From contig CM097884.1 of the NCBI GenBank assembly GCA_044892505.1, positions 91,264,001 to 91,328,000 on the forward strand: a stretch of DNA of 64,000 bases, given 5' to 3'. The position numbers were made by a program, and so were the translations under genes. Under the pieces are notes generated by a model, which was not told where the DNA came from, did not search any database, and worked only from the letters and a program-made list of their open reading frames with translations. Below are positions 1 through 54,832 of the stretch, in pieces; the first letter of the stretch is position 1, and every line of letters starts with the position of its first letter. Origin of the DNA: Schmidtea nova. Its lineage: Eukaryota.

Positions 1-3000
1 CCACATCATTATGTGAAGAAAGTGACAATCAAATTTGAAGTGACGAAAGTTGTTAAAGTGAAATTGGTTGTGAAAGGCTGTGTTGACAAAGTACCGACGC
101 CGCCAACATTGCGTCCAACAACTAAATCTACTCCAACTAGACCAGGAGCTACAACAACTACAACTAGACGAACAACGACTCTGAAACCATGTGCCGTGAA
201 ACTCGTCATCAAAGATAAGCAATTGACAGGAATTACAGTGACACCAAAGATTTCCAAGAGTGATGTTAAAAAGTTGAGACCTGATTGGAAACATCCAAAA
301 CAAGGTGTTGAGTTCAAACGTGGAAAACACACAATTGTTGTCAAGATCGTCAAAGGCACTCACCAAAAGAAACCAAACAGAATCACAGCAGCCGGTTTGA
401 AAGTAGTCAATGTCAATCCAGGCGACAAATTGAGCAAATACTTCAAGTCAGTTACAATTGTAATTACGAAACAAAAGTTCACAAGAGGTGGCAAACGAAA
501 GACTGTCAAGAAAACGATTAAAGTCCCATTGAAAACAATTGTTGACGATTTGAGAAATGTGTTGAGAAAACCACATCATTATGTGAAGAAAGTGACATTC
601 AAATTTGAAGTGACGAAAGTTGTTAAAGTGAAATTGGTTGTGAAAGGCTGTGTTGACAAAGTACCGACGCCACCAACATTGCGTCCAACAACTAAATCTA
701 CTCCAACTAGACCAGGAGCTACAACAACTACAACTAGACGAACAACGACTCTGAAACCATGTGCCGTGAAACTCGTCATCAAAGATAAGCAATTGACAGG
801 AATTACAGTGACACCAAAGATTTCCAAGAGTGATGTTAAAAAGTTGAGACCTGATTGGAAACATCCAAAACAAGGTGTTGAGTTCAAACGTGGAAAACAC
901 ACAATTGTTGTCAAGATCGTCAAAGGCACTCACCAAAAGAAACCAAACAGAATCACAGCAGCCGGTTTGAAAGTAGTCAATGTCAATCCAGGCGACAAAT
1001 TGAGCAAATACTTCAAGTCAGTTACAATTGTAATTACGAAACAAAAGTTCACAAGAGGTGGCAAACGAAAGACTGTCAAGAAAACGATTAAAGTCCCATT
1101 GAAAACAATTTTTGACGATTTGAGAAATGTGTTGAGAAAACCACATCATTATGTGAAGAAAGTGACATTCAAATTTGAAGTGACGAAAGTTGTTAAAGTG
1201 AAATTGGTTGTGAAAGGCTGTGTTGACAAAGTACCGACGCCGCCAACATTGCGTCCAACAACTAAATCTACTCCAACTAGACCAGGAGCTACAACAACTA
1301 CAACTAGACGAACAACGACTCTGAAACCATGTGCCGTGAAACTCGTCATCAAAGATAAGCAATTGACAGGAATTACAGTGACACCAAAGATTTCCAAGAG
1401 TGATGTTAAAAAGTTGAGACCTGATTGGAAACATCCAAAACAAGGTGTTGAGTTCAAACGTGGAAAACACACAATTGTTGTCAAGATCGTCAAAGGCACT
1501 CACCAAAAGAAACCAAACAGAATCACAGCAGCCGGTTTGAAAGTAGTCAATGTCAATCCAGGCGACAAATTGAGCAAATACTTCAAGTCAGTTACAATTG
1601 TAATTACGAAACAAAAGTTCACAAGAGGTGGCAAACGAAAGACTGTCAAGAAAACGATTAAAGTCCCATTGAAAACAATTTTTGACGATTTGAAAAACGT
1701 TTTGAGAAAACCACATCATTATGTGAAGAAAGTGACAATCAAATTTGAAGTGACGAAAGTTGTTAAAGTGAAATTGGTTGTGAAAGGCTGTGTTGACAAA
1801 GTACCGACGCCGCCAACATTGCGTCCAACAACTAAATCTACTCCAACTAGACCAGGAGCTACAACAACTACAACTAGACGAACAACGACTCTGAAACCAT
1901 GTGCCGTGAAACTCGTCATCAAAGATAAGCAATTGACAGGAATTACAGTGACACCAAAGATTTCCAAGAGTGATGTTAAAAAGTTGAGACCTGATTGGAA
2001 ACATCCAAAACAAGGTGTTGAGTTCAAACGTGGAAAACACACAATTGTTGTCAAGATCGTCAAAGGCACTCACCAAAAGAAACCAAACAGAATCACAGCA
2101 GCCGGTTTGAAAGTAGTCAATGTCAATCCAGGCGACAAATTGAGCAAATACTTCAAGTCAGTTACAATTGTAATTACGAAACAAAAGTTCACAAGAGGTG
2201 GCAAACGAAAGACTGTCAAGAAAACGATTAAAGTCCCATTGAAAACAATTGTTGACGATTTGAGAAATGTGTTGAGAAAACCACATCATTATGTGAAGAA
2301 AGTGACATTCAAATTTGAAGTGACGAAAGTTGTTAAAGTGAAATTGGTTGTGAAAGGCTGTGTTGACAAAGTACCGACGCCACCAACATTGCGTCCAACA
2401 ACTAAATCTACTCCAACTAGACCAGGAGCTACAACAACTACAACTAGACGAACAACGACTCTGAAACCATGTGCCGTGAAACTCGTCATCAAAGATAAGC
2501 AATTGACAGGAATTACAGTGACACCAAAGATTTCCAAGAGTGATGTTAAAAAGTTGAGACCTGATTGGAAACATCCAAAACAAGGTGTTGAGTTCAAACG
2601 TGGAAAACACACAATTGTTGTCAAGATCGTCAAAGGCACTCACCAAAAGAAACCAAACAGAATCACAGCAGCCGGTTTGAAAGTAGTCAATGTCAATCCA
2701 GGCGACAAATTGAGCAAATACTTCAAGTCAGTTACAATTGTAATTACGAAACAAAAGTTCACAAGAGGTGGCAAACGAAAGACTGTCAAGAAAACGATTA
2801 AAGTCCCATTGAAAACAATTTTTGACGATTTGAAAAACGTTTTGAGAAAACCACATCATTATGTGAAGAAAGTGACAATCAAATTTGAAGTGACGAAAGT
2901 TGTTAAAGTGAAATTGGTTGTGAAAGGCTGTGTTGACAAAGTACCGACGCCGCCAACATTGCGTCCAACAACTAAATCTACTCCAACTAGACCAGGAGCT

Positions 3001-6000
3001 ACAACAACTACAACTAGACGAACAACGACTCTGAAACCATGTGCCGTGAAACTCGTCATCAAAGATAAGCAATTGACAGGAATTACAGTGACACCAAAGA
3101 TTTCCAAGAGTGATGTTAAAAAGTTGAGACCTGATTGGAAACATCCAAAACAAGGTGTTGAGTTCAAACGTGGAAAACACACAATTGTTGTCAAGATCGT
3201 CAAAGGCACTCACCAAAAGAAACCAAACAGAATCACAGCAGCCGGTTTGAAAGTAGTCAATGTCAATCCAGGCGACAAATTGAGCAAATACTTCAAGTCA
3301 GTTACAATTGTAATTACGAAACAAAAGTTCACAAGAGGTGGCAAACGAAAGACTGTCAAGAAAACGATTAAAGTCCCATTGAAAACAATTGTTGACGATT
3401 TGAGAAATGTGTTGAGAAAACCACATCATTATGTGAAGAAAGTGACATTCAAATTTGAAGTGACGAAAGTTGTTAAAGTGAAATTGGTTGTGAAAGGCTG
3501 TGTTGACAAAGTACCGACGCCGCCAACATTGCGTCCAACAACTAAATCTACTCCAACTAGACCAGGAGCTACAACAACTACAACTAGACGAACAACGACT
3601 CTGAAACCATGTGCCGTGAAACTCGTCATCAAAGATAAGCAATTGACAGGAATTACAGTGACACCAAAGATTTCCAAGAGTGATGTTAAAAAGTTGAGAC
3701 CTGATTGGAAACATCCAAAACAAGGTGTTGAGTTCAAACGTGGAAAACACACAATTGTTGTCAAGATCGTCAAAGGCACTCACCAAAAGAAACCAAACAG
3801 AATCACAGCAGCCGGTTTGAAAGTAGTCAATGTCAATCCAGGCGACAAATTGAGCAAATACTTCAAGTCAGTTACAATTGTAATTACGAAACAAAAGTTC
3901 ACAAGAGGTGGCAAACGAAAGACTGTCAAGAAAACGATTAAAGTCCCATTGAAAACAATTTTTGACGATTTGAAAAACGTTTTGAGAAAACCACATCATT
4001 ATGTGAAGAAAGTGACAATCAAATTTGAAGTGACGAAAGTTGTTAAAGTGAAATTGGTTGTGAAAGGCTGTGTTGACAAAGTACCGACGCCGCCAACATT
4101 GCGTCCAACAACTAAATCTACTCCAACTAGACCAGGAGCTACAACAACTACAACTAGACGAACAACGACTCTGAAACCATGTGCCGTGAAACTCGTCATC
4201 AAAGATAAGCAATTGACAGGAATTACAGTGACACCAAAGATTTCCAAGAGTGATGTTAAAAAGTTGAGACCTGATTGGAAACATCCAAAACAAGGTGTTG
4301 AGTTCAAACGTGGAAAACACACAATTGTTGTCAAGATCGTCAAAGGCACTCACCAAAAGAAACCAAACAGAATCACAGCAGCCGGTTTGAAAGTAGTCAA
4401 TGTCAATCCAGGCGACAAATTGAGCAAATACTTCAAGTCAGTTACAATTGTAATTACGAAACAAAAGTTCACAAGAGGTGGCAAACGAAAGACTGTCAAG
4501 AAAACGATTAAAGTCCCATTGAAAACAATTTTTGACGATTTGAAAAACGTTTTGAGAAAACCACATCATTATGTGAAGAAAGTGACAATCAAATTTGAAG
4601 TGACGAAAGTTGTTAAAGTGAAATTGGTTGTGAAAGGCTGTGTTGACAAAGTACCGACGCCGCCAACATTGCGTCCAACAACTAAATCTACTCCAACTAG
4701 ACCAGGAGCTACAACAACTACAACTAGACGAACAACGACTCTGATACCATGTGCCGTGAAACTCGTCATCAAAGATAAGCAATTGACAGGAATTACAGTG
4801 ACACCAAAGATTTCCAAGAGTGATGTTAAAAAGTTGAGACCTGATTGGAAACATCCAAAACAAGGTGTTGAGTTCAAACGTGGAAAACACACAATTGTTG
4901 TCAAGATCGTCAAAGGCACTCACCAAAAGAAACCAAACAGAATCACAGCAGCCGGTTTGAAAGTAGTCAATGTCAATCCAGGCGACAAATTGAGCAAATA
5001 CTTCAAGTCAGTTACAATTGTAATTACGAAACAAAAGTTCACAAGAGGTGGCAAACGAAAGACTGTCAAGAAAACGATTAAAGTCCCATTGAAAACAATT
5101 TTTGACGATTTGAGAAATGTGTTGAGAAAACCACATCATTATGTGAAGAAAGTGACATTCAAATTTGAAGTGACGAAAGTTGTTAAAGTGAAATTGGTTG
5201 TGAAAGGCTGTGTTGACAAAGTACCGACGCCACCAACATTGCGTCCAACAACTAAATCTACTCCAACTAGACCAGGAGCTACAACAACTACAACTAGACG
5301 AACAACGACTCTGAAACCATGTGCCGTGAAACTCGTCATCAAAGATAAGCAATTGACAGGAATTACAGTGACACCAAAGATTTCCAAGAGTGATGTTAAA
5401 AAGTTGAGACCTGATTGGAAACATCCAAAACAAGGTGTTGAGTTCAAACGTGGAAAACACACAATTGTTGTCAAGATCGTCAAAGGCACTCACCAAAAGA
5501 AACCAAACAGAATCACAGCAGCCGGTTTGAAAGTAGTCAATGTCAATCCAGGCGACAAATTGAGCAAATACTTCAAGTCAGTTACAATTGTAATTACGAA
5601 ACAAAAGTTCACAAGAGGTGGCAAACGAAAGACTGTCAAGAAAACGATTAAAGTCCCATTGAAAACAATTTTTGACGATTTGAAAAACGTTTTGAGAAAA
5701 CCACATCATTATGTGAAGAAAGTGACAATCAAATTTGAAGTGACGAAAGTTGTTAAAGTGAAATTGGTTGTGAAAGGCTGTGTTGACAAAGTACCGACGC
5801 CGCCAACATTGCGTCCAACAACTAAATCTACTCCAACTAGACCAGGAGCTACAACAACTACAACTAGACGAACAACGACTCTGAAACCATGTGCCGTGAA
5901 ACTCGTCATCAAAGATAAGCAATTGACAGGAATTACAGTGACACCAAAGATTTCCAAGAGTGATGTTAAAAAGTTGAGACCTGATTGGAAACATCCAAAA

Positions 6001-9000
6001 CAAGGTGTTGAGTTCAAACGTGGAAAACACACAATTGTTGTCAAGATCGTCAAAGGCACTCACCAAAAGAAACCAAACAGAATCACAGCAGCCGGTTTGA
6101 AAGTAGTCAATGTCAATCCAGGCGACAAATTGAGCAAATACTTCAAGTCAGTTACAATTGTAATTACGAAACAAAAGTTCACAAGAGGTGGCAAACGAAA
6201 GACTGTCAAGAAAACGATTAAAGTCCCATTGAAAACAATTTTTGACGATTTGAAAAATGTTTTGAGAAAACCACATCATTATGTGAAGAAAGTGACAATC
6301 AAATTTGAAGTGACGAAAGTTGTTAAAGTGAAATTGGTTGTGAAAGGCTGTGTTGACAAAGTACCGACGCCGCCAACATTGCGTCCAACAACTAAATCTA
6401 CTCCAACTAGACCAGGAGCTACAACAACTACAACTAGACGAACAACGACTCTGAAACCATGTGCCGTGAAACTCGTCATCAAAGATAAGCAATTGACAGG
6501 AATTACAGTGACACCAAAGATTTCCAAGAGTGATGTTAAAAAGTTGAGACCTGATTGGAAACATCCAAAACAAGGTGTTGAGTTCAAACGTGGAAAACAC
6601 ACAATTGTTGTCAAGATCGTCAAAGGCACTCACCAAAAGAAACCAAACAGAATCACAGCAGCCGGTTTGAAAGTAGTCAATGTCAATCCAGGCGACAAAT
6701 TGAGCAAATACTTCAAGTCAGTTACAATTGTAATTACGAAACAAAAGTTCACAAGAGGTGGCAAACGAAAGACTGTCAAGAAAACGATTAAAGTCCCATT
6801 GAAAACAATTTTTGACGATTTGAAAAATGTTTTGAGAAAACCACATCATTATGTGAAGAAAGTGACAATCAAATTTGAAGTGACGAAAGTTGTTAAAGTG
6901 AAATTGGTTGTGAAAGGCTGTGTTGACAAAGTACCGACGCCGCCAACATTGCGTCCAACAACTAAATCTACTCCAACTAGACCAGGAGCTACAACAACTA
7001 CAACTAGACGAACAACGACTCTGAAACCATGTGCCGTGAAACTCGTCATCAAAGATAAGCAATTGACAGGAATTACAGTGACACCAAAGATTTCCAAGAG
7101 TGATGTTAAAAAGTTGAGACCTGATTGGAAACATCCAAAACAAGGTGTTGAGTTCAAACGTGGAAAACACACAATTGTTGTCAAGATCGTCAAAGGCACT
7201 CACCAAAAGAAACCAAACAGAATCACAGCAGCCGGTTTGAAAGTAGTCAATGTCAATCCAGGCGACAAATTGAGCAAATACTTCAAGTCAGTTACAATTG
7301 TAATTACGAAACAAAAGTTCACAAGAGGTGGCAAACGAAAGACTGTCAAGAAAACGATTAAAGTCCCATTGAAAACAATTGTTGACGATTTGAGAAATGT
7401 GTTGAGAAAACCACATCATTATGTGAAGAAAGTGACATTCAAATTTGAAGTGACGAAAGTTGTTAAAGTGAAATTGGTTGTGAAAGGCTGTGTTGACAAA
7501 GTACCGACGCCGCCAACATTGCGTCCAACAACTAAATCTACTCCAACTAGACCAGGAGCTACAACAACTACAACTAGACGAACAACGACTCTGAAACCAT
7601 GTGCCGTGAAACTCGTCATCAAAGATAAGCAATTGACAGGAATTACAGTGACACCAAAGATTTCCAAGAGTGATGTTAAAAAGTTGAGACCTGATTGGAA
7701 ACATCCAAAACAAGGTGTTGAGTTCAAACGTGGAAAACACACAATTGTTGTCAAGATCGTCAAAGGCACTCACCAAAAGAAACCAAACAGAATCACAGCA
7801 GCCGGTTTGAAAGTAGTCAATGTCAATCCAGGCGACAAATTGAGCAAATACTTCAAGTCAGTTACAATTGTAATTACGAAACAAAAGTTCACAAGAGGTG
7901 GCAAACGAAAGACTGTCAAGAAAACGATTAAAGTCCCATTGAAAACAATTTTTGACGATTTGAAAAACGTTTTGAGAAAACCACATCATTATGTGAAGAA
8001 AGTGACAATCAAATTTGAAGTGACGAAAGTTGTTAAAGTGAAATTGGTTGTGAAAGGCTGTGTTGACAAAGTACCGACGCCGCCAACATTGCGTCCAACA
8101 ACTAAATCTACTCCAACTAGACCAGGAGCTACAACAACTACAACTAGACGAACAACGACTCTGAAACCATGTGCCGTGAAACTCGTCATCAAAGATAAGC
8201 AATTGACAGGAATTACAGTGACACCAAAGATTTCCAAGAGTGATGTTAAAAAGTTGAGACCTGATTGGAAACATCCAAAACAAGGTGTTGAGTTCAAACG
8301 TGGAAAACACACAATTGTTGTCAAGATCGTCAAAGGCACTCACCAAAAGAAACCAAACAGAATCACAGCAGCCGGTTTGAAAGTAGTCAATGTCAATCCA
8401 GGCGACAAATTGAGCAAATACTTCAAGTCAGTTACAATTGTAATTACGAAACAAAAGTTCACAAGAGGTGGCAAACGAAAGACTGTCAAGAAAACGATTA
8501 AAGTCCCATTGAAAACAATTGTTGACGATTTGAGAAATGTGTTGAGAAAACCACATCATTATGTGAAGAAAGTGACATTCAAATTTGAAGTGACGAAAGT
8601 TGTTAAAGTGAAATTGGTTGTGAAAGGCTGTGTTGACAAAGTACCGACGCCACCAACATTGCGTCCAACAACTAAATCTACTCCAACTAGACCAGGAGCT
8701 ACAACAACTACAACTAGACGAACAACGACTCTGAAACCATGTGCCGTGAAACTCGTCATCAAAGATAAGCAATTGACAGGAATTACAGTGACACCAAAGA
8801 TTTCCAAGAGTGATGTTAAAAAGTTGAGACCTGATTGGAAACATCCAAAACAAGGTGTTGAGTTCAAACGTGGAAAACACACAATTGTTGTCAAGATCGT
8901 CAAAGGCACTCACCAAAAGAAACCAAACAGAATCACAGCAGCCGGTTTGAAAGTAGTCAATGTCAATCCAGGCGACAAATTGAGCAAATACTTCAAGTCA

Positions 9001-12000
9001 GTTACAATTGTAATTACGAAACAAAAGTTCACAAGAGGTGGCAAACGAAAGACTGTCAAGAAAACGATTAAAGTCCCATTGAAAACAATTTTTGACGATT
9101 TGAAAAACGTTTTGAGAAAACCACATCATTATGTGAAGAAAGTGACAATCAAATTTGAAGTGACGAAAGTTGTTAAAGTGAAATTGGTTGTGAAAGGCTG
9201 TGTTGACAAAGTACCGACGCCGCCAACATTGCGTCCAACAACTAAATCTACTCCAACTAGACCAGGAGCTACAACAACTACAACTAGACGAACAACGACT
9301 CTGAAACCATGTGCCGTGAAACTCGTCATCAAAGATAAGCAATTGACAGGAATTACAGTGACACCAAAGATTTCCAAGAGTGATGTTAAAAAGTTGAGAC
9401 CTGATTGGAAACATCCAAAACAAGGTGTTGAGTTCAAACGTGGAAAACACACAATTGTTGTCAAGATCGTCAAAGGCACTCACCAAAAGAAACCAAACAG
9501 AATCACAGCAGCCGGTTTGAAAGTAGTCAATGTCAATCCAGGCGACAAATTGAGCAAATACTTCAAGTCAGTTACAATTGTAATTACGAAACAAAAGTTC
9601 ACAAGAGGTGGCAAACGAAAGACTGTCAAGAAAACGATTAAAGTCCCATTGAAAACAATTTTTGACGATTTGAAAAACGTTTTGAGAAAACCACATCATT
9701 ATGTGAAGAAAGTGACAATCAAATTTGAAGTGACGAAAGTTGTTAAAGTGAAATTGGTTGTGAAAGGCTGTGTTGACAAAGTACCGACGCCGCCAACATT
9801 GCGTCCAACAACTAAATCTACTCCAACTAGACCAGGAGCTACAACAACTACAACTAGACGAACAACGACTCTGAAACCATGTGCCGTGAAACTCGTCATC
9901 AAAGATAAGCAATTGACAGGAATTACAGTGACACCAAAGATTTCCAAGAGTGATGTTAAAAAGTTGAGACCTGATTGGAAACATCCAAAACAAGGTGTTG
10001 AGTTCAAACGTGGAAAACACACAATTGTTGTCAAGATCGTCAAAGGCACTCACCAAAAGAAACCAAACAGAATCACAGCAGCCGGTTTGAAAGTAGTCAA
10101 TGTCAATCCAGGCGACAAATTGAGCAAATACTTCAAGTCAGTTACAATTGTAATTACGAAACAAAAGTTCACAAGAGGTGGCAAACGAAAGACTGTCAAG
10201 AAAACGATTAAAGTCCCATTGAAAACAATTGTTGACGATTTGAGAAATGTGTTGAGAAAACCACATCATTATGTGAAGAAAGTGACATTCAAATTTGAAG
10301 TGACGAAAGTTGTTAAAGTGAAATTGGTTGTGAAAGGCTGTGTTGACAAAGTACCGACGCCACCAACATTGCGTCCAACAACTAAATCTACTCCAACTAG
10401 ACCAGGAGCTACAACAACTACAACTAGACGAACAACGACTCTGAAACCATGTGCCGTGAAACTCGTCATCAAAGATAAGCAATTGACAGGAATTACAGTG
10501 ACACCAAAGATTTCCAAGAGTGATGTTAAAAAGTTGAGACCTGATTGGAAACATCCAAAACAAGGTGTTGAGTTCAAACGTGGAAAACACACAATTGTTG
10601 TCAAGATCGTCAAAGGCACTCACCAAAAGAAACCAAACAGAATCACAGCAGCCGGTTTGAAAGTAGTCAATGTCAATCCAGGCGACAAATTGAGCAAATA
10701 CTTCAAGTCAGTTACAATTGTAATTACGAAACAAAAGTTCACAAGAGGTGGCAAACGAAAGACTGTCAAGAAAACGATTAAAGTCCCATTGAAAACAATT
10801 TTTGACGATTTGAAAAACGTTTTGAGAAAACCACATCATTATGTGAAGAAAGTGACAATCAAATTTGAAGTGACGAAAGTTGTTAAAGTGAAATTGGTTG
10901 TGAAAGGCTGTGTTGACAAAGTACCGACGCCGCCAACATTGCGTCCAACAACTAAATCTACTCCAACTAGACCAGGAGCTACAACAACTACAACTAGACG
11001 AACAACGACTCTGAAACCATGTGCCGTGAAACTCGTCATCAAAGATAAGCAATTGACAGGAATTACAGTGACACCAAAGATTTCCAAGAGTGATGTTAAA
11101 AAGTTGAGACCTGATTGGAAACATCCAAAACAAGGTGTTGAGTTCAAACGTGGAAAACACACAATTGTTGTCAAGATCGTCAAAGGCACTCACCAAAAGA
11201 AACCAAACAGAATCACAGCAGCCGGTTTGAAAGTAGTCAATGTCAATCCAGGCGACAAATTGAGCAAATACTTCAAGTCAGTTACAATTGTAATTACGAA
11301 ACAAAAGTTCACAAGAGGTGGCAAACGAAAGACTGTCAAGAAAACGATTAAAGTCCCATTGAAAACAATTTTTGACGATTTGAAAAACGTTTTGAGAAAA
11401 CCACATCATTATGTGAAGAAAGTGACAATCAAATTTGAAGTGACGAAAGTTGTTAAAGTGAAATTGGTTGTGAAAGGCTGTGTTGACAAAGTACCGACGC
11501 CGCCAACATTGCGTCCAACAACTAAATCTACTCCAACTAGACCAGGAGCTACAACAACTACAACTAGACGAACAACGACTCTGAAACCATGTGCCGTGAA
11601 ACTCGTCATCAAAGATAAGCAATTGACAGGAATTACAGTGACACCAAAGATTTCCAAGAGTGATGTTAAAAAGTTGAGACCTGATTGGAAACATCCAAAA
11701 CAAGGTGTTGAGTTCAAACGTGGAAAACACACAATTGTTGTCAAGATCGTCAAAGGCACTCACCAAAAGAAACCAAACAGAATCACAGCAGCCGGTTTGA
11801 AAGTAGTCAATGTCAATCCAGGCGACAAATTGAGCAAATACTTCAAGTCAGTTACAATTGTAATTACGAAACAAAAGTTCACAAGAGGTGGCAAACGAAA
11901 GACTGTCAAGAAAACGATTAAAGTCCCATTGAAAACAATTGTTGACGATTTGAGAAATGTGTTGAGAAAACCACATCATTATGTGAAGAAAGTGACATTC

Positions 12001-24000: not shown

Positions 24001-27000
24001 AAATTGGTTGTGAAAGGCTGTGTGGACAAAGTACCGACGCCACCAACATTGCGTCCAACAACTAAATCTACTCCAACTAGACCAGGAGCTACAACAACTA
24101 CAACTAGACGAACAACGACTCTGAAACCATGTGCCGTGAAACTCGTCATCAAAGATAAGCAATTGACAGGAATTACAGTGACACCAAAGATTTCCAAGAG
24201 TGATGTTAAAAAGTTGAGACCTGATTGGAAACATCCAAAACAAGGTGTTGAGTTCAAACGTGGAAAACACACAATTGTTGTCAAGATCGTCAAAGGCACT
24301 CACCAAAAGAAACCAAACAGAATCACAGCAGCCGGTTTGAAAGTAGTCAATGTCAATCCAGGCGACAAATTGAGCAAATACTTCAAGTCAGTTACAATTG
24401 TAATTACGAAACAAAAGTTCACAAGAGGTGGCAAACGAAAGACTGTCAAGAAAACGATTAAAGTCCCATTGAAAACAATTGTTGACGATTTGAAAAACGT
24501 TTTGAGAAAACCACATCATTATGTGAAGAAAGTGACAATCAAATTTGAAGTGACGAAAGTTGTTAAAGTGAAATTGGTTGTGAAAGGCTGTGTTGACAAA
24601 GTACCGACGCCACCAACATTGCGTCCAACAACTAAATCTACTCCAACTAGACCAGGAGCTACAACAACTACAACTAGACGAACAACGACTCTGAAACCAT
24701 GTGCCGTGAAACTCGTCATCAAAGATAAGCAATTGACAGGAATTACAGTGACACCAAAGATTTCCAAGAGTGATGTTAAAAAGTTGAGACCTGATTGGAA
24801 ACATCCAAAACAAGGTGTTGAGTTCAAACGTGGAAAACACACAATTGTTGTCAAGATCGTCAAAGGCACTCACCAAAAGAAACCAAACAGAATCACAGCA
24901 GCCGGTTTGAAAGTAGTCAATGTCAATCCAGGCGACAAATTGAGCAAATACTTCAAGTCAGTTACAATTGTAATTACGAAACAAAAGTTCACAAGAGGTG
25001 GCAAACGAAAGACTGTCAAGAAAACGATTAAAGTCCCATTGAAAACAATTGTTGACGATTTGAAAAACGTTTTGAGAAAACCACATCATTATGTGAAGAA
25101 AGTGACAATCAAATTTGAAGTGACGAAAGTTGTTAAAGTGAAATTGGTTGTGAAAGGCTGTGTTGACAAAGTACCGACGCCACCAACATTGCGTCCAACA
25201 ACTAAATCTACTCCAACTAGACCAGGAGCTACAACAACTACAACTAGACGAACAACGACTCTGAAACCATGTGCCGTGAAACTCGTCATCAAAGATAAGC
25301 AATTGACAGGAATTACAGTGACACCAAAGATTTCCAAGAGTGATGTTAAAAAGTTGAGACCTGATTGGAAACATCCAAAACAAGGTGTTGAGTTCAAACG
25401 TGGAAAACACACAATTGTTGTCAAGATCGTCAAAGGCACTCACCAAAAGAAACCAAACAGAATCACAGCAGCCGGTTTGAAAGTAGTCAATGTCAATCCA
25501 GGCGACAAATTGAGCAAATACTTCAAGTCAGTTACAATTGTAATTACGAAACAAAAGTTCACAAGAGGTGGCAAACGAAAGACTGTCAAGAAAACGATTA
25601 AAGTCCCATTGAAAACAATTGTTGACGATTTGAAAAACGTTTTGAGAAAACCACATCATTATGTGAAGAAAGTGACAATCAAATTTGAAGTGACGAAAGT
25701 TGTTAAAGTGAAATTGGTTGTGAAAGGCTGTGTTGACAAAGTACCGACGCCACCAACATTGCGTCCAACAACTAAATCTACTCCAACTAGACCAGGAGCT
25801 ACAACAACTACAACTAGACGAACAACGACTCTGAAACCATGTGCCGTGAAACTCGTCATCAAAGATAAGCAATTGACAGGAATTACAGTGACACCAAAGA
25901 TTTCCAAGAGTGATGTTAAAAAGTTGAGACCTGATTGGAAACATCCAAAACAAGGTGTTGAGTTCAAACGTGGAAAACACACAATTGTTGTCAAGATCGT
26001 CAAAGGCACTCACCAAAAGAAACCAAACAGAATCACAGCAGCCGGTTTGAAAGTAGTCAATGTCAATCCAGGCGACAAATTGAGCAAATACTTCAAGTCA
26101 GTTACAATTGTAATTACGAAACAAAAGTTCACAAGAGGTGGCAAACGAAAGACTGTCAAGAAAACGATTAAAGTCCCATTGAAAACAATTGTTGACGATT
26201 TGAAAAATGTTTTGAGAAAACCACATCATTATGTGAAGAAAGTGACAATCAAATTTGAAGTGACGAAAGTTGTTAAAGTGAAATTGGTTGTGAAAGGCTG
26301 TGTTGACAAAGTACCGACGCCACCAACATTGCGTCCAACAACTAAATCTACTCCAACTAGACCAGGAGCTACAACAACTACAACTAGACGAACAACGACT
26401 CTGAAACCATGTGCCGTGAAACTCGTCATCAAAGATAAGCAATTGACAGGAATTACAGTGACACCAAAGATTTCCAAGAGTGATGTTAAAAAGTTGAGAC
26501 CTGATTGGAAACATCCAAAACAAGGTGTTGAGTTCAAACGTGGAAAACACACAATTGTTGTCAAGATCGTCAAAGGCACTCACCAAAAGAAACCAAACAG
26601 AATCACAGCAGCCGGTTTGAAAGTAGTCAATGTCAATCCAGGCGACAAATTGAGCAAATACTTCAAGTCAGTTACAATTGTAATTACGAAACAAAAGTTC
26701 ACAAGAGGTGGCAAACGAAAGACTGTCAAGAAAACGATTAAAGTCCCATTGAAAACAATTGTTGACGATTTGAAAAACGTTTTGAGAAAACCACATCATT
26801 ATGTGAAGAAAGTGACAATCAAATTTGAAGTGACGAAAGTTGTTAAAGTGAAATTGGTTGTGAAAGGCTGTGTTGACAAAGTACCGACGCCACCAACATT
26901 GCGTCCAACAACTAAATCTACTCCAACTAGACCAGGAGCTACAACAACTACAACTAGACGAACAACGACTCTGAAACCATGTGCCGTGAAACTCGTCATC

Positions 27001-45000: not shown

Positions 45001-48000
45001 GTTGACGATTTGAAAAACGTTTTGAGAAAACCACATCATTATGTGAAGAAAGTGACAATCAAATTTGAAGTGACGAAAGTTGTTAAAGTGAAATTGGTTG
45101 TGAAAGGCTGTGTTGACAAAGTACCGACGCCACCAACATTGCGTCCAACAACTAAATCTACTCCAACTAGACCAGGAGCTACAACAACTACAACTAGACG
45201 AACAACGACTCTGAAACCATGTGCCGTGAAACTCGTCATCAAAGATAAGCAATTGACAGGAATTACAGTGACACCAAAGATTTCCAAGAGTGATGTTAAA
45301 AAGTTGAGACCTGATTGGAAACATCCAAAACAAGGTGTTGAGTTCAAACGTGGAAAACACACAATTGTTGTCAAGATCGTCAAAGGCACTCACCAAAAGA
45401 AACCAAACAGAATCACAGCAGCCGGTTTGAAAGTAGTCAATGTCAATCCAGGCGACAAATTGAGCAAATACTTCAAGTCAGTTACAATTGTAATTACGAA
45501 ACAAAAGTTCACAAGAGGTGGCAAACGAAAGACTGTCAAGAAAACGATTAAAGTCCCATTGAAAACAATTGTTGACGATTTGAAAAACGTTTTGAGAAAA
45601 CCACATCATTATGTGAAGAAAGTGACAATCAAATTTGAAGTGACGAAAGTTGTTAAAGTGAAATTGGTTGTGAAAGGCTGTGTTGACAAAGTACCGACGC
45701 CACCAACATTGCGTCCAACAACTAAATCTACTCCAACTAGACCAGGAGCTACAACAACTACAACTAGACGAACAACGACTCTGAAACCATGTGCCGTGAA
45801 ACTCGTCATCAAAGATAAGCAATTGACAGGAATTACAGTGACACCAAAGATTTCCAAGAGTGTTGTTAAAAAGTTGAGACCTGATTGGAAACATCCAAAA
45901 CAAGGTGTTGAGTTCAAACGTGGAAAACACACAATTGTTGTCAAGATCGTCAAAGGCACTCACCAAAAGAAACCAAACAGAATCACAGCAGCCGGTTTGA
46001 AAGTAGTCAATGTCAATCCAGGCGACAAATTGAGCAAATACTTCAAGTCAGTTACAATTGTAATTACGAAACAAAAGTTCACAAGAGGTGGCAAACGAAA
46101 GACTGTCAAGAAAACGATTAAAGTCCCATTGAAAACAATTGTTGACGATTTGAAAAACGTTTTGAGAAAACCACATCATTATGTGAAGAAAGTGACAATC
46201 AAATTTGAAGTGACGAAAGTTGTTAAAGTGAAATTGGTTGTGAAAGGCTGTGTTGACAAAGTACCGACGCCACCAACATTGCGTCCAACAACTAAATCTA
46301 CTCCAACTAGACCAGGAGCTACAACAACTACAACTAGACGAACAACGACTCTGAAACCATGTGCCGTGAAACTCGTCATCAAAGATAAGCAATTGACAGG
46401 AATTACAGTGACACCAAAGATTTCCAAGAGTGATGTTAAAAAGTTGAGACCTGATTGGAAACATCCAAAACAAGGTGTTGAGTTCAAACGTGGAAAACAC
46501 ACAATTGTTGTCAAGATCGTCAAAGGCACTCACCAAAAGAAACCAAACAGAATCACAGCAGCCGGTTTGAAAGTAGTCAATGTCAATCCAGGCGACAAAT
46601 TGAGCAAATACTTCAAGTCAGTTACAATTGTAATTACGAAACAAAAGTTCACAAGAGGTGGCAAACGAAAGACTGTCAAGAAAACGATTAAAGTCCCATT
46701 GAAAACAATTGTTGACGATTTGAAAAACGTTTTGAGAAAACCGCATCATTATGTGAAGAAAGTGACAATCAAATTTGAAGTGACGAAAGTTGTTAAAGTG
46801 AAATTGGTTGTGAAAGGCTGTGTTGACAAAGTACCGACGCCACCAACATTGCGTCCAACAACTAAATCTACTCCAACTAGACCAGGAGCTACAACAACTA
46901 CAACTAGACGAACAACGACTCTGAAACCATGTGCCGTGAAACTCGTCATCAAAGATAAGCAATTGACAGGAATTACAGTGACACCAAAGATTTCCAAGAG
47001 TGATGTTAAAAAGTTGAGACCTGATTGGAAACATCCAAAACAAGGTGTTGAGTTCAAACGTGGAAAACACACAATTGTTGTCAAGATCGTCAAAGGCACT
47101 CACCAAAAGAAACCAAACAGAATCACAGCAGCCGGTTTGAAAGTAGTCAATGTCAATCCAGGCGACAAATTGAGCAAATACTTCAAGTCAGTTACAATTG
47201 TAATTACGAAACAAAAGTTCACAAGAGGTGGCAAACGAAAGACTGTCAAGAAAACGATTAAAGTCCCATTGAAAACAATTGTTGACGATTTGAAAAACGT
47301 TTTGAGAAAACCGCATCATTATGTGAAGAAAGTGACAATCAAATTTGAAGTGACGAAAGTTGTTAAAGTGAAATTGGTTGTGAAAGGCTGTGTTGACAAA
47401 GTACCGACGCCACCAACATTGCGTCCAACAACTAAATCTACTCCAACTAGACCAGGAGCTACAACAACTACAACTAGACGAACAACGACTCTGAAACCAT
47501 GTGCCGTGAAACTCGTCATCAAAGATAAGCAATTGACAGGAATTACAGTGACACCAAAGATTTCCAAGAGTGATGTTAAAAAGTTGAGACCTGATTGGAA
47601 ACATCCAAAACAAGGTGTTGAGTTCAAACGTGGAAAACACACAATTGTTGTCAAGATCGTCAAAGGCACTCACCAAAAGAAACCAAACAGAATCACAGCA
47701 GCCGGTTTGAAAGTAGTCAATGTCAATCCAGGCGACAAATTGAGCAAATACTTCAAGTCAGTTACAATTGTAATTACGAAACAAAAGTTCACAAGAGGTG
47801 GCAAACGAAAGACTGTCAAGAAAACGATTAAAGTCCCATTGAAAACAATTGTTGACGATTTGAAAAACGTTTTGAGAAAACCACATCATTATGTGAAGAA
47901 AGTGACAATCAAATTTGAAGTGACGAAAGTTGTTAAAGTGAAATTGGTTGTGAAAGGCTGTGTTGACAAAGTACCGACGCCACCAACATTGCGTCCAACA

Positions 48001-48178
48001 ACTAAATCTACTCCAACTAGACCAGGAGCTACAACAACTACAACTAGACGAACAACGACTCTGAAACCATGTGCCGTGAAACTCGTCATCAAAGATAAGC
48101 AATTGACAGGAATTACAGTGACACCAAAGATTTCCAAGAGTGATGTTAAAAAGTTGAGACCTGATTGGAAACATCCAA
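1..48178 (+). repeat. Coding tandem array of 570-bp units (190 aa), 84 full units plus a partial 85th
   Basis: The unit start ccacatcattatgtgaag recurs at 1, 571, 1141 and so on to 47881 (1+570x84; two late units read ccg). Only substitutions were seen, no indels. Identity to the consensus ends at 48178. Confidence 0.98.
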
Positions 48179-51100
48179 GTCAAGGTGTTAGTTTTAATAT
48201 TGGTCAACATAAAATTGAGGTCCTTTTAAACAATTCAATTTCCTCTGTGTCATCAATAGGTTTAATTGCTCCTTTAGTTTCATATTCGTCTCTTACTTCA
48301 TTATATTTTGATTATTTGAGCATATTCATTAATTACCGCACTTCCTCTCATGTTACAACATTAGTTTATCGTTCTCAACCACTTTCTATGTTTTCTGTTT
48401 TGCCTAACGTAGTAAATAGTTCTCTGTTTGATGTGGCTTCAATCACTTATAAATTTTCTGTTGTTCAAGTAATCAAGCTTCGCCTCAATATACAAGGTTG
48501 TCTGAAATATTACATTTCGTCTCCTCCCATTTCTTCTTTATCGTCGTCGTCAGCTACTCCACCAGTATCCTTATCCGCAATCTCCTCTACACCTTTGCCA
48601 TTTACTTTGCCACCTTCTCTGACTCCGTGTCTGGATTCAAATCTTGTTGTCAATGAAAATTTCACCGAATTCAAATTCTCTCCACCTTTAACAAAATGTG
48701 AAGAAAAGAAAATCCGCCATAACTTTACAAATTCTTTGGTTGGCGTGCGTCTCATATGCGGTTCTCACTCTATTACTGTTTTCATTAAGGATCATGAATC
48801 ATTTGTTACAAATAATATTGTTTTCCAAATAGGTATGTTCATTGTCAACAGTTCTACTTCTGATTCCTTTAGTAAATACTTTGAATATTTTGATTTAGTT
48901 ATTAGTCGACATTCCATTTTATCTTTTGATTCTGAGCCTTTGTCACCGCTGACAGTTTTCAGTTTTCCACTTTCTAGCAAAATTGAAAGACTTCCAAGCA
49001 TGATCAACTCTGTTCAACAGAATGTAGAATTCATTCGCTTTGATTTTAAGTTGAAATCGGATGTTGTTATTAAGCTATTAGTTAATGGTTGCGTTAAAAA
49101 ATATCTCTCCTCTACACTTACTACTCTTCCTACCGGTTTTGTACAGGAAGAAACATATAAGTGTGAGAAAACATACAACTTGTTGGATAATTTGTTATTA
49201 TTTAAAATTTCTGCAGACCAGAATAATGATTTGAACTTAAATTCTTTGAGGCATCCTAAAAAAGGTTATTCATTCCAAAGTGGTTTTTATTCTATCAAAT
49301 TTTCCTTGCCCCCTTCTCAAAATATAAATATTGCAGAATTCGGTTTAAGATTATTGGATAAGATCAGCGATAGTTCTGCTAACGATTTCATTGAAATATC
49401 CAACATCTTCGTTGTACGGTTGGTTAGGAGCTTTGGTCGTGTTGTCGGAAGAAAGGTTTCTATACCGACTCCTGATCGCTTGACTGTGAATAATGTTAAT
49501 AAACTTATAAAGACTAGCTTGTCATCAATTAATAAAATAGTTATAAAATTCATTATCAAACGAAATGTCAGAATCAGTGCAACAATGAAAGGCTGCACGA
49601 AAGCCGATGCTAAACTTATCACAACATCCAAACCTTCAATGATTTCTCCATTTACACCTTTCATAAATGAGCAATCTTTCACTTGCCGATACACGTTCAA
49701 TTTACTCAAAAATAATAATTTTAATTTGAAAATTATTCCGAATTTACCTGAAACGAAGTTAGACAAATTGAAATTGGTAAAAAAGTCCAAACAAGCTGGC
49801 GTGGTTTTAGGCAAAGGGTTTTATTCGATTGAATTATCCTTGCCCACCGATGAAAGTCAAAACGTTCTTGAACTCGGTTTAGTTATTTATGATGAAAGCA
49901 ATGGAAGATATACAAACAATTTGATTAAACTTGTGAAAATTGAAGTTGTCCGGTTAACGAGAAGTTTCGGTAAAATGGTTTCAAGAAATATGCCGATATC
50001 TATTCCGGAAAATTTGTCCGTAAGAGATGTTAGAAATGTTTTGTCTAATGGAATTAATAATATTAACAAAATTACATTGAAGTTCTACGTAAAAAGAGAC
50101 TTAAAGATAAGCGTTAATGTTAAAGGTTGTAAAGATTCTGACAAAGATCTCCTTCTATCCACAGTGACTCCAACACCAGTTATCAATGATGAATCGTATC
50201 GATGCTCGGTTGTTAGAAGCCTTCTACAAGATTTAAGAAATATACAATTGAACGTCAAGCCAGCAATTTCATCTGCTGATGCCAACAAATTAAGAGGTTT
50301 ATTTGATTCGTTGACTAGAGGAGCGACTCTGATTAAAGGAGAATACATTTTCGAAATAAATCTTAATCCTGGTCAAACTTTAAATGTCATCGAAATCGGT
50401 CTTTTAATTTTGAATCACAATGAAAACAAACCTGTTTCCAGTGTCATTCAGTCAATCGGTGTTTCTGTGACACGACTTGTTAAATCATTTGGTCGACTCA
50501 AAGAAGTCAATGTACCCCTTAATATTCCAGATGATCTGTCAATAAAAGATTTGAAAAATATTATGACCTCTGCTATTAACAACATCAACAAAGTAATGAT
50601 AAAATTACAACTGAAGAGAAGTATCAAAGCAGAAATTAACTTCAAAGGTTGCTCCAGCTTCGACTCAACAACTACAGCACAAAGTTCGACAGTAACTCCA
50701 TTTATCAATGAAGAATCATATCAATGTGAAAGCATTGTCAATTTGTTGGATTTACAGAAATCAGTAAAATTATCCAAAGTTCCACCGTTGTCTGCAGCTG
50801 ACAATTTACGATTGAGGTTGACAACAATCCGTCCAAATTTAGGAGCGCCTATCATCAAAGGTCAACAGGAAATTTCAATTTCATTCCCAACTGGTGAGAA
50901 AGGAACAATTGTGAAATTTGGTTTGAATATTATTGGTGAAAACAGCAACAGATTTGTGCAAAACTTTATCAAAAATCTCGCAGTTACTGCATATCGAGTT
51001 CGAATGAGTTTTGGTAATATAATCTCGACCCCAATGAAAATTAATTTACCATCAAAATTGACTGTTGGAAAACTGAAAAATATTCTTTCCACTCAAATAG

Positions 51101-51218
51101 CAAATGTTAATAAAATCGTTATTACATTTGAGACTTTGAAAAAGATTCAACTTAACATCATTATGAATGGATGCTTTTCTTCTACAGTCTTGAAAACTAC
51201 AACTTTACCTCCTGTGGG
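1..51218 (+). CDS. Giant 5'-partial coding segment (apparently one exon) of a repetitive extracellular adhesive/mucin-like protein
   Basis: Frame 1 is open from base 1 (cca cat cat tat gtg = PHHYV) to the N gap at 51219, giving 17,072 complete codons. The track's M at 13 is an internal GTG. No signal peptide or start is in the window, and I saw no intron-like interruption. Confidence 0.9.
48070..51174 (+). repeat. Six diverged in-frame copies of the array domain (Cys...GC)
   Basis: Cys-to-Cys spans: 48070-48501 (chimeric), 48628-49092, 49162-49596, 49684-50130, 50203-50652, 50725-51174, i.e. 144-155 aa. Each ends in a hydrophobic strand plus GC (LNIQGC, LLVNGC, ATMKGC, VNVKGC, INFKGC, IIMNGC) and is followed by an S/T/P-rich linker. 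Confidence 0.88.
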
Positions 51219-51885
51219 NNNNNNNNNNNNNNNNNNNNNNNNNNNNNNNNNNNNNNNNNNNNNNNNNNNNNNNNNNNNNNNNNNNNNNNNNNNNNNNNNN
51301 NNNNNNNNNNNNNNNNNNNNNNNNNNNNNNNNNNNNNNNNNNNNNNNNNNNNNNNNNNNNNNNNNNNNNNNNNNNNNNNNNNNNNNNNNNNNNNNNNNNN
51401 NNNNNNNNNNNNNNNNNNNNNNNNNNNNNNNNNNNNNNNNNNNNNNNNNNNNNNNNNNNNNNNNNNNNNNNNNNNNNNNNNNNNNNNNNNNNNNNNNNNN
51501 NNNNNNNNNNNNNNNNNNNNNNNNNNNNNNNNNNNNNNNNNNNNNNNNNNNNNNNNNNNNNNNNNNNNNNNNNNNNNNNNNNNNNNNNNNNNNNNNNNNN
51601 NNNNNNNNNNNNNNNNNNNNNNNNNNNNNNNNNNNNNNNNNNNNNNNNNNNNNNNNNNNNNNNNNNNNNNNNNNNNNNNNNNNNNNNNNNNNNNNNNNNN
51701 NNNNNNNNNNNNNNNNNNNNNNNNNNNNNNNNNNNNNNNNNNNNNNNNNNNNNNNNNNNNNNNNNNNNNNNNNNNNNNNNNNNNNNNNNNNNNNNNNNNN
51801 NNNNNNNNNNNNNNNNNNNNNNNNNNNNNNNNNNNNNNNNNNNNNNNNNNNNNNNNNNNNNNNNNNNNNNNNNNNNNNNNNNNNN
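51219..51885. other. Assembly gap (667 N) inside the giant gene
   Basis: Run of N. Frame continuity across it cannot be verified. Confidence 0.99.
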
Positions 51886-54233
51886 AACAAATACTATTCA
51901 CATGGCCAAATCATCCAAGAAAAATTAGAGTGTGACTCCAAGTAGAAAAATATAATTTTAATTACGTTGAGAGTGTTAATAATTTTTTCGTAGAATTTGT
52001 TCTGATGGTAGAACAATTCCAATTGTTGTTTGTAATAATAAATGGACAAAATGGCAGAAATGTTCCAAATTTTGTGGAGCAGGTGAAACTTCACGACGAC
52101 AATTTTGCATATTGAATCAATTGATGCGAAGCATTGATAAACAAGACCTAATAAAGAAAATTAATGGAAATTGTTTGAATAAAATCGAAGTGAAGCCATG
52201 TTTTGATCAACCTTGTCAAGGTACCGTTTAAAAAAGTATATTGGAGTATAAATTATATTTTAGAATCATGTAAATTAACCGAATGGTCCGATTGGAGTCC
52301 GTGTGACAACACCAGTTGTAAAGACGAATATCAAACCAGAGTTAGACAACTTATTAATGCTAACAAAAACAGCCTTTGTACAAAAGCATTAATGGAATCT
52401 CGAAGATGCATGAAACCACAATGTTTGTTAATTATGGAATTTTTCGTTATAGTTTAATTAACCGAATTAGGTCCATGTGCGGAAAATGCCGTCCTACACG
52501 AGTGCGCCAATATCTTGTGTCCAACGTCATGCAGCCATATGAATCCACGTGTAAGATGCGTCTCCAGCACTAATAACTGTATCAAAGCTTGCGTTTGCAA
52601 ATTGGGTTATCTTTACCAAAATGGAAAATGTGTTCGCAGATCTCAGTGCCTGTGCTTGGCACCTAATTTTAACACGATAATGCTTTCTAAATCATCTTCA
52701 ACTACTGATAGTCAAAAAGCGACAATGGTTCAATTTTTTAATCTGTAATTCTAATTTTATTTTATTTTTATTAGACCTATCCCGGACAAAGCCAAACAAG
52801 CAATTCCGAAAGTCCCGGAGATTCAAATAAATCCAGCTCAACATCGTCATCATCCACGACAACTAAGTTGTCGAATGCTATAATCACAGAACTTTCAAAA
52901 GAAGATCTTGATAAAATAAAACATAATAAGCAATTTACTCCACCGTGGAGACCCGGTTATACAAATCCTCCTCTTTATCAGTAATTCAATTTTGAGAAGT
53001 AATATTAAACATTGATCAATGTAGAGCTAGTCCAGCATGGTATGCGGGCGCAACTCCAGCGGGAGCCACAATAAAATTGCCCGACAATTCAGCTACTGAA
53101 CAGAAGATTGACAATGTGCCAACAGGTTCTAAAGCCACCAATCCCGTAAATTCGCCTGAAACATCGCCGACTATTAAATATTTCGTAACGCAAAAATACG
53201 CCCCGTCAAATTCTAATCAGAACCAAAATCAAAATCAAAATGCTGGCGCGTCTGTAACAACTCAAAAGTCTCAACAGTTGACATCCGATTCACTTTTATC
53301 TGGCTCATCAAGTGAGTTTTATTTTGTAACAATCATCCATAATGGCTTTTAAAATTTTCTAGAAAGTCCAAGTTCACAACCTGGACAAGGGTCTCAATCT
53401 CCTGACTCAGCAGCCAGTGGCTCTCTTCAACCGACCGGCTCTGGTAATTTACAAGGCACAGTTACTAGTTTCCCGGGTTTCAGTTTATCGACAATAGATA
53501 AAAGTCACGTAAACGCAAATTCAACTGTGATCTTAGACTGCCAGTCATGGTTTGATGGTTTTTATTATTATTTTCGATTAAAATTTCAAATTCAGTGTCT
53601 GCACAAATGGGCGATTAGTATGTAATGGGCCCCGGTGTATAAGTGAGTTCTGAAGCGAATTTCTGCGATAAATTATTATTGTAAACCTCTAGTTGGCAAT
53701 AATACTTGGTCCGATTGGTCAGCATGGTCCCCTTGCACCGGTATTTGCGGAACTGGAATTAGAAGAAGATTTAGACAGTGTCAAGGAATCAATTGCAAAG
53801 ATACTTCTACCAGTGAAGCTGGATTTACAAGATTTATGGCGACGAATGATGTCCAAGCTGAAGATAAACAATGCATGATTAAAGAATGTTCTTGCGTGTT
53901 TTCTAAAGAATTAATGAAGGTATGTATAACAATTAAAATGATCCTTGAATAAATAGCGATTATTCATTGAAACAGATCCATATTGGAGAAAGTTCTATCA
54001 AAAAATTTAATATCGACTTATCGGCTTTCTGGATCGAAAAAGACAATGTGAAAGGTTTGTCGCACAGCAAAGAATTAGTGAAATCTGGAGATGTCATCAA
54101 AAGTGGAATAACAATTCAAGCCAAATGCAGTCAATGGTAAATTACATTTATTCTGCTGAAATTATTCTTACATGTCAATATGTTTAGCTCTTGCAAGGAC
54201 GGGCAATTCAAGTGCACAACTGAATGTTCGTAA
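51886..54233 (+). CDS. Spliced C-terminal part of the giant protein: 11 exons, 619 aa plus stop
   Basis: Exons 51886-51941, 51994-52220, 52264-52422, 52471-52727, 52775-52980, 53025-53311, 53363-53549, 53596-53642, 53693-53919, 53976-54136, 54188-54233. All 10 introns are GT-AG and 43-56 nt. Exon lengths sum to 1860 nt in one open frame ending ...CSCKDGQFKCTTECS*. Linkage to the giant exon across the gap is inferred from strand and proximity. Confidence 0.85.
52043..52216 (+). other. Thrombospondin type-1 repeat 1
   Basis: WTKWQKCSKFCGAGETSRRQFC...NCLNKIEVKPCFDQPC fits the WxxWxxCSxxCGxGxxxRxRxC pattern. Confidence 0.88.
52264..52422 (+). other. Thrombospondin type-1 repeat 2 (spondin-like)
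   Basis: CKLTEWSDWSPCDNTSCKDEYQTRVR...CTKALMESRRCMKPQC. Confidence 0.88.
52476..52649 (+). other. TIL (trypsin inhibitor-like cysteine-rich) domain
   Basis: CAENAVLHECANILCPTSCSHMNPRVRCVSSTNNCIKACVCKLGYLYQNGKCVRRSQC has the 10-Cys TIL spacing. Confidence 0.9.
53707..53889 (+). other. Thrombospondin type-1 repeat 3
   Basis: WSDWSAWSPCTGICGTGIRRRFRQCQGINC...EDKQCMIKEC. This frame differs from the one the ORF track reports at 53693. Confidence 0.92.
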
Positions 54234-54271
54234 TTTTAAAACAATAACTTGTGAAATTTGTGTTGATTAAT

Positions 54272-54277
54272 AATAAA
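54272..54277 (+). terminator. Polyadenylation signal AATAAA
   Basis: Lies 38 nt after the stop at 54233, followed by T-rich sequence. Confidence 0.6.
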
Positions 54278-54660: not shown

Positions 54661-54810
54661 NNNNNNNNNNNNNNNNNNNNNNNNNNNNNNNNNNNNNNNN
54701 NNNNNNNNNNNNNNNNNNNNNNNNNNNNNNNNNNNNNNNNNNNNNNNNNNNNNNNNNNNNNNNNNNNNNNNNNNNNNNNNNNNNNNNNNNNNNNNNNNNN
54801 NNNNNNNNNN
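54661..54810. other. Assembly gap (150 N)
   Basis: Run of N. Confidence 0.99.
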
Positions 54811-54832
54811 TTTCACCTTTGATCTTTTTTTA

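Follow-up and report, generated by a model that had tools for sequence, protein, structure and literature searches.

The described systems closest to the gene reported here are the ap2 adhesive proteins of flatworms. Mlig-ap2 of Macrostomum lignano consists of 14,794 amino acids (aa), with vWD, TIL and LDLa domains in its N-terminal part and several TSP1 domains in its C-terminal part, and its core is built of 46 repeats (21 of 255 aa and 25 of 221 aa); the protein is glycosylated and touches the surface, and RNA interference (RNAi) against it resulted in a non-adhesive phenotype (PMC6410801, PMC9229212). Tmed-ap2 of Theama mediterranea (7,228 aa) contains 330- and 230-aa repeats, its C-terminus consists of three TSP1 and one TIL, its Lys content is 22.5%, and O-glycosylation sites make up 11% (PMC9229212). 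Mile-ap2 of Minona ileanae has at least 12 Thr-rich repeats and a tail of three TSP1 and a TIL, and its exon is at least 15 kb long; Mile-ap2b also ends in three TSP1 and one TIL (PMC6745481, PMC9229212). The ap2 cores have been described as Thr-rich tandem repeats "of unknown function", which are not conserved between taxa (PMC9229212, PMC6745481). In the flatworm adhesion literature that was searched, ap2 appeared only in macrostomids, a proseriate and a polyclad, with no triclad or planarian ap2 among them, and the adhesion papers found made no mention of a discoidin fold. Here we analysed a stretch of 64,000 bases from Schmidtea nova (assembly GCA_044892505.1, contig CM097884.1, positions 91,264,001 to 91,328,000 of the forward strand; the window hereafter), and found that it holds the 3' part of a real, giant and transcribed gene, which in our judgement probably encodes an extracellular beads-on-a-string glycoprotein of the flatworm ap2 adhesive type.

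The frame of this gene, which lies on the forward strand as do all of its features given below, is frame 0, stop-free from base 1 of the window to the first gap (1-51216). Its 17,072 codons were recounted and gave the same figure as the initial annotation of this stretch, and no stop-free run of 300 codons or more was present in the remaining frames and strands of the window. Two stretches of N interrupt the window, at 51219-51885 (667 N) and at 54661-54810 (150 N). The giant exon is uninterrupted, starts outside the window, ends at 51217/51218, and encodes at least 90 copies of a domain of about 150 residues. Together with the spliced tail the coding total within the window is 17,696 residues, about 1.98 MDa before glycosylation (1.91 MDa from the giant exon and 0.07 MDa from the tail), in accordance with the earlier claim of a giant protein of more than 17,600 aa and about 2 MDa or more. 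A search for a membrane anchor revealed no hydrophobic segment, as the Kyte-Doolittle mean over 19 residues peaked at 0.86 within the tail and at 1.38 within the diverged stretch of the giant exon; the earlier remark that a transmembrane anchor is lacking therefore holds. At least 51 kb in one exon is extreme, yet precedented, since human MUC12 alleles reach up to 23,080 aa within a single exon (PMC13345508), and the benchmark of about 20 kb that had been quoted for the largest human exon is outdated by the same alleles.

Most of the giant exon is a core array (1-47880) of 84 in-register units of exactly 570 bp (190 aa), which runs off the 5' end of the window. Tandem Repeats Finder was silent on it, because the 570-bp period is above the 500-bp limit of the program, and the array was measured by script instead. 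Over the whole 47,880 bp there is neither an indel nor a stop, and the units are 98.6-100% identical: 18 sites vary, with a mean pairwise difference of 2.45 and a maximum of 8 per 570 bp, and variant-free stretches reach 4,045 bp. At 7/18 of the variant sites the changes are synonymous and at 11/18 conservative non-synonymous, where 23.5% synonymous would be expected for random changes. The variants are ordered along the array: heterogeneity is confined largely to units 1-36, where a weak periodicity of 3 units is seen, units 37-84 hardly differ from one another, and an 8-unit block is duplicated, with 4,559 identical bases at an 8-unit offset from position 24699. These ordered variant blocks and higher-order patterns fit unequal crossing-over and are atypical of a mis-join. 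One unit consists of a 154-aa domain running from Cys to Cys and a 36-aa Thr/Pro linker. No cryptic intron was recognized in the unit, as judged by a search for GT..AG segments of 38-69 nt with at least 72% A+T. The coding strand of the array is A-rich and T-poor (AT skew about +0.30). On the minus strand of 1-47880 two frames of the unit come close to being open, with one stop per unit in one of them and three in the other; this is probably a side effect of the composition of the coding strand and not a second gene.

The homogenised array ends inside a domain. Its 3' boundary, at about 48178, falls within the hybrid unit 85 (47881-48501), which is core-like up to this point and diverged after it, and which contains the domain D85 (48070-48501). 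Five further diverged copies of the core domain follow, D86 (48628-49092), D87 (49162-49596), D88 (49684-50130), D89 (50203-50652) and D90 (50725-51174), separated by Ser/Thr/Pro linkers (23-29 aa between D86 and D90, 23-42 residues overall) and sharing 17-38% identity among themselves and with the core; the giant exon closes with the last linker at 51175-51218 and the donor at 51217/51218, where an RNA contig departs from the genome sequence. The first Cys, three Gly, one Pro and a terminal Gly-Cys are kept in all seven copies (the core and D85-D90), and this conserved pattern indicates a constraint at the protein level. In this part of the exon (48171-51216) 1,015 unique codons stay open, the chance of which is about 1e-32. 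At position 49750, within D88, an A stands in an RNA contig (run X4, below) where the assembly and the other runs have G; this first-position difference would change Glu to Lys. It was read in a single contig, which stems from another sample, and an allelic variant, RNA editing and an error are all possible sources of it.

Sequence searches left the repeat an orphan. Pfam, at E up to 1, assigned neither the core unit nor the diverged domains to any family, word-indexed protein searches (queries of 922 aa, of 10,000 aa in region-restricted form, and of 338 aa), limited by query length and shared words, came back blank, and a feature search of the ESM Atlas gave no usable match. A profile of the seven copies, was run against 1.84 billion representative proteins, where the only matches were three bacterial repeat proteins of marginal score (E 7e-5 to 6e-4), which were judged spurious. 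AlphaFold2 models were built from the seven-copy alignment, and both the core domain (pLDDT 84.0, pTM 0.82) and D88 (pLDDT 84.9, pTM 0.79) were modelled as the same jelly roll with the same strand order. Exhaustive structural alignment (VIA-align) placed the CBM32 of C. perfringens GH89 at the top for both models (Z 11.8 and 10.9, rmsd 3.0, 120-122 residues aligned), followed by dozens of CBM32, F5/8 type C, DOC/APC10 and fucolectin domains. Both models matched discoidin I (Z 9.1-9.4) and neuropilin b1/b2 (Z 8.1-8.8), and the D88 model matched factor VIII C1 as well (Z 8.2). Between 41 and 61 chains reached Z of at least 8, almost all from one superfamily, with 120-133 residues aligned in the matches of CBM32/discoidin type. 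Foldseek concurred (best E 1.8e-3), as did the structure search of the ESM Atlas, with TM 0.60-0.63 to carbohydrate-binding and F5/8 type C clusters.

On the basis of these models we are confident that the repeat is a sequence-orphan member of the galactose-binding-like fold, that is, a predicted jelly roll of discoidin/CBM32 type. The initial annotation did not recognise the repeat unit from any characterised protein; this is corrected here with respect to the fold, which is a known one. The structural alignments cover the whole length of the model; in the partner proteins they stop at residues 424 and 583 (neuropilin-1) and at residue 2169 (factor VIII), where the canonical discoidin disulfides have their C-terminal cysteines. 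The first and the last Cys are invariant in 7/7 copies, and this terminal pair would close each bead by a predicted disulfide. The models thus liken the repeat to the discoidin, F5/8 type C (PF00754) and CBM32 domains, as a putative beta-sandwich of about 150 residues with Z of 8-12 and with termini joined by a Cys pair; unlike them, it has no significant sequence match and its surface is extremely Lys-rich. We know of no other case where a discoidin-type domain is repeated at least 90 times in one chain.

The core unit has a pI of 10.9 and a net charge of +40, with 20.5% Lys and 14.7% Thr. The 36-residue linker, which makes up 19% of the unit length, contains 39% Thr and 19% Pro. In the core domain itself Lys reaches 23.4%, with a charge of +34 per bead, against 6.5-11.4% Lys in D85-D90, therefore the amplified copy is strongly Lys-enriched relative to its older paralogues.

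The unique 3' portion of the giant exon is represented in four public sequencing runs of one 2024 study (X1 to X4 below), whose contigs were aligned to 48400-54300. The contigs of X1, X2 and X3 retain the introns and look like DNA (record 17 of X3 is unbroken over 51965-53705, and X3 carries Nextera adapter ends); this study is possibly the same as that of the assembly, and these DNA-like contigs are not independent support for the assembly. The spliced X4 contig, on the other hand, is independent evidence for both the transcription and the gene model. This contig, record 19 (3,502 nt, depth 62.6), is unspliced over 49466-51218, continues with 13 letters which come from neither side of the gap, then proceeds at 51886 and passes nine of the GT..AG joints downstream. 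The contigs of X1 and X3 extend past 51218 into AT-rich sequence with a donor-like start. Because of the spliced joint in X4 and of this donor-like continuation, the gap at 51219-51885 was concluded to hide an intron, along with the opening 13 (or 14) bases of the exon behind it, and 51217/51218 to be the end of the giant exon. The frame continues across the gap, since the two bases at 51217-51218 and the 13 letters make 15, that is five sense codons, and 51886 opens a frame-0 codon. The possibility raised at the outset, that the exons behind the gap belong to a separate gene, was tested on the same contig, which joins 51218 to 51886 in frame in one transcript.

Downstream of the gap there are ten introns, all GT..AG, 43-56 nt long and all seen in X4 contigs. 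The junction 52727/52775 is represented by adjoining pieces of one contig (52471-52727 and 52777-52980, two record letters apart), and the junction 54136/54188 by matching loose ends (54136, 54187) in three contigs. The introns have 66-87% A+T and the exons of the tail 53-68%. Transcription is thereby documented for the 3' 4.3 kb, which covers the last 1.75 kb of the giant exon and the tail. The depth of X4 climbs steeply at 53916-54300, reaching 894-1,460 at the 3' end. Some X4 contigs have non-matching ends, at 49466, 50546, 52357 and 53985, none of them at a splice-site dinucleotide; those at 49466 and 53985 finish in GGG right before the match, as in template-switching cDNA. The loose ends at 49466 and 50546 were considered as acceptors of an alternative 5' exon or of trans-splicing and rejected, as no AG precedes them, and the loose ends are read as template-switch or assembly chimeras.

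The eleven exon pieces behind the gap join into 1,860 bases, which encode 619 aa and the stop TAA at 54231-54233, so that the length of the spliced tail given in the initial annotation was reproduced exactly by the X4-backed gene model. The tail starts with the piece 51886-51941, which was placed, as were the pieces that follow, by X4 contigs and the gene model. The first TSP1 domain (WTKWQKC) is encoded at 51994-52220, with TSP_1 at E 6e-4, just below the Pfam cut-off, and TSP1_CCN at 4e-4; the second (WSDWSPC) at 52264-52422, with TSP_1 at 28.1 bits (cut-off 21.6) and TSP1_spondin at E 4e-9. The exon 52471-52727 carries the TIL domain (37.2 bits, cut-off 24.5) and the start of a Ser/Thr-rich spacer, which continues through 52775-52980 and, with Asn and Gln added to its composition, through 53025-53311. 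The exon 53363-53549 contains the end of the spacer and the start of a short Cys module, which is completed by a micro-exon (53596-53642) with the motif CxxCxC(x6)C(x4)C, half of a vWC pattern. The third TSP1 (WSAWSPC; TSP_1 at 23.2 bits, cut-off 21.6) and the start of the terminal Cys module are encoded at 53693-53919, the body of this vWC-like module at 53976-54136, and the last coding piece, supported by the X4 loose ends, at 54188-54233 with CxxCxC(x6)C(x3)C and then TAA. The order of the modules is thus TSP1, TSP1, TIL, spacer, short Cys module, TSP1 and terminal Cys module. The spacer, 242 aa long, contains 19% Ser and 12% Thr, lacks Cys, and is rich in Asn and Gln too. From a CxxCxC motif to the end of the protein there are 17 residues, and the AATAAA nearest downstream of the stop (54272-54277) is a candidate poly(A) signal, judged from the sequence.

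The TSP1 and TIL domains noticed earlier were hereby confirmed, as three WxxWxxC TSP1, two of them above the Pfam cut-off, and one TIL above its cut-off; the vWC modules reported with them were reduced to the CxxCxC half-motif, as the full PROSITE VWFC pattern was not matched in the tail. CTCK (Pfam Cys_knot) was not found in any exon, and LDLa and EMI domains (Pfam) were not detected in the window.

When this gene is compared with the published ap2 proteins, the similarity noted in the initial annotation is borne out by the literature, since a tail of three TSP1 and a TIL, a comparable Lys content and a Thr-rich repeat core have all been described there (PMC9229212, PMC6745481). The common features are the giant size and the near-identical tandem repeat core in a very long exon (190 aa per repeat here, about 200-330 aa in ap2), Thr-rich repeats, for which O-glycosylation is predicted or shown in ap2 and may be expected here, a Lys content of about 20% (22.5% in Tmed-ap2), and a C-terminus of three TSP1 and a TIL as in Tmed-ap2 and Mile-ap2b, with several TSP1 in Mlig-ap2. 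The visible 3' part of the gene, as predicted from its sequence, thus has every architectural feature of ap2 that could be checked. It differs in the number of the repeats, at least 84 in the window against 12-46, in the length of the protein, which is no less than 17,696 aa in the window and reaches 14,794 aa at most in ap2, in the use of a single type of unit (190 aa) where ap2 has two, and in the fold, which has been assigned here to a repeat whose counterparts are "of unknown function" in the papers.

We infer from the types of its domains that the protein is secreted. The Thr/Pro linkers are probably O-glycosylated and would keep the chain extended and hydrated. The polycationic beads could bind negative surfaces and polyanionic glycans by charge, and possibly in a lectin-like manner as well, and the Cys-rich tail may couple the chain to partner proteins or to itself. 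Release could be achieved by a secreted polyanion, as proposed for Macrostomum. A similar combination is found among sea-star footprint proteins, which contain FA58C and galactose-binding domains and for which cross-linking between glycans and lectins has been proposed (PMC9382459). Sfp1, Sfp10 and Sfp11 serve temporary adhesion and combine lectin-type domains with vWD/TIL-type modules and glycans (PMC9382459); they belong to another phylum, are much smaller and have no array of near-identical domains, so that the analogy is a functional one only.

Several points weigh against the assignment to an ap2-type adhesive. Pfam F5_F8_type_C (PF00754) has no match to the repeat domain at E up to 1, and the seven-copy profile has no match to PDB sequences at E up to 10; a lectin-like function is suggested by the predicted fold, and a shared fold is no proof of sugar binding. 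Membership in ap2 is likewise proposed by analogy of architecture, while the published repeats are not conserved between taxa, and the N-terminus, where a signal peptide and the vWD, TIL and LDLa domains of Mlig-ap2 would be sought, lies upstream of the window. Furthermore X4 has no cover at 48400-49384, and its contigs stop short of the core array; this fits a 3'-biased library, in view of the depth profile and of the loose ends in GGG, without proving it.

The same gene could alternatively specify a general scaffold of mucus or gliding slime, a mucin-like gel former instead of a glue of the adhesive glands, which we hold to be unlikely and yet worth serious consideration. The Thr/Pro linkers, the 242-aa Ser/Thr spacer and the Cys-rich ends with TIL and vWC-like modules occur in mucins too, the repeats of mucins are as a rule carried in one giant exon (PMC13345508), and mucus proteins with an adhesive-like domain architecture were reported in the Minona paper (PMC6745481). 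The human mucins MUC12 and MUC4 share with this gene the giant central in-frame repeat exon, the segments rich in Ser, Thr and Pro, which are glycosylated in mucins, and the Cys-rich ends. However, the linker is only 19% of the unit here, and the rest is a predicted folded, Lys-rich, cationic domain, unlike in the mucins, which are dominated by Pro/Thr/Ser (PTS) sequence. The end of the protein is different too, with no CTCK at the C-terminus and neither a transmembrane nor a SEA end, and three TSP1 with a TIL and about 20% Lys correspond to the published signature of ap2.

Another possibility, which overlaps with both the glue and the mucus function and to which we assign a still lower probability, is that the gene is real and the assembled length of the array is wrong, either inflated or collapsed, or variable between haplotypes. 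Units that are 98.6-100% identical, with variant-free stretches as long as 4,045 bp, would be prone to this, two N stretches are nearby, and the short-read contigs end at the edge of the array (record 1 of X1). Against it, the register is perfect over 47,880 bp, with no indel or frameshift, and the variants are ordered, the 5' third of the array being heterogeneous and its 3' part homogeneous, with the 8-unit duplication in addition.

That the gene is the orthologue of SCO-spondin, the protein of the Reissner fibre, is very improbable. TSP1, TIL and vWC-like modules are common to both, and SCO-spondin also carries an F5/8 type C domain, which counts in favour of this relationship. Nevertheless, only three TSP1 are present here, and LDLa, EMI and CTCK are all missing from the window by Pfam, the N-terminus being outside of it; moreover SCO-spondin is not known for a tandem array of 84 near-identical polycationic discoidin-like domains. 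From the similarity to SCO-spondin and to gel-forming mucins that had been pointed out for this stretch, the shared domain vocabulary remains and nothing further, with no CTCK and no LDLa. Least credible of all is an accidentally open frame in a non-coding satellite or a dead gene, a possibility that is already refuted where the 3' part is concerned. In its favour, one open unit opens the whole array (a 190-codon unit is open by chance at about 1e-6), and the synonymous excess is only mild (7/18 versus 23.5% expected); against it, the 1,015 unique codons are open as well, a common fold pattern runs through the seven diverged copies, the spliced transcript keeps the reading frame, and 1/6 frames of the unit is open.

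Beyond the 3' end of the giant gene the window contains some further features. Directly after the second N stretch there is a 103-nt inverted repeat (54827-54929 and 54931-55033) with a 1-nt spacer and 98% complementarity, which is either a hairpin-forming palindrome or an assembly artefact of a contig end, and after it comes a (TAA)n microsatellite at about 55022-55090. An open reading frame (ORF) of 231 aa on the minus strand (56972-57667), 2.7 kb downstream of the giant gene, contains the C-terminal dimerisation domain of the hAT family (Pfam E 2.4e-13) and is a transposase remnant or a domesticated fragment. A 262-aa ORF on the same strand (58184-58972) has no Pfam match. Two paralogous head-to-head ORFs (174 and 158 aa), both Trp- and His-rich and with no Pfam family, are located at 61309-61833 (minus strand) and 63316-63792 (plus strand) on 436-nt inverted arms that are 72% complementary; a look-up by exact protein sequence returned no entry for them. 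Scans for Rfam families and tRNAs in the 48-64 kb part found nothing.

Returning to the adhesive of ap2 type, it is conceivable, although we consider it rather doubtful, that the 570-bp array continues upstream, in which case an exon of more than 90 kb would encode more than 30,000 residues. The product would be a glue of a kind that has not been described, a chain in which at least 150 polycationic beads of lectin-type fold alternate with O-glycan-bearing linkers and which could cross-link to itself. If true, a protein of more than 30,000 residues would be near or above titin, among the largest animal proteins, and its bead-glycan self-cross-links and its charge-based binding to surfaces would both be reversible by a secreted polyanion. 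The gene also offers a benchmark for assembly and annotation and a useful case for asking how mRNAs of this length are made.

It should be emphasized that ap2 is the surface-binding part of the fast, reversible underwater glue of flatworms and that the repeat cores make up most of the protein. What is new here is a predicted fold for the repeat, together with the contrast in Lys between the old copies (about 9%) and the homogenised array (23%). The fold and this contrast lead to a testable physical model, in which cationic beads of a lectin-type fold would be carried on glycosylated linkers, and the 154-residue domain is small enough to be expressed and assayed for adhesion.

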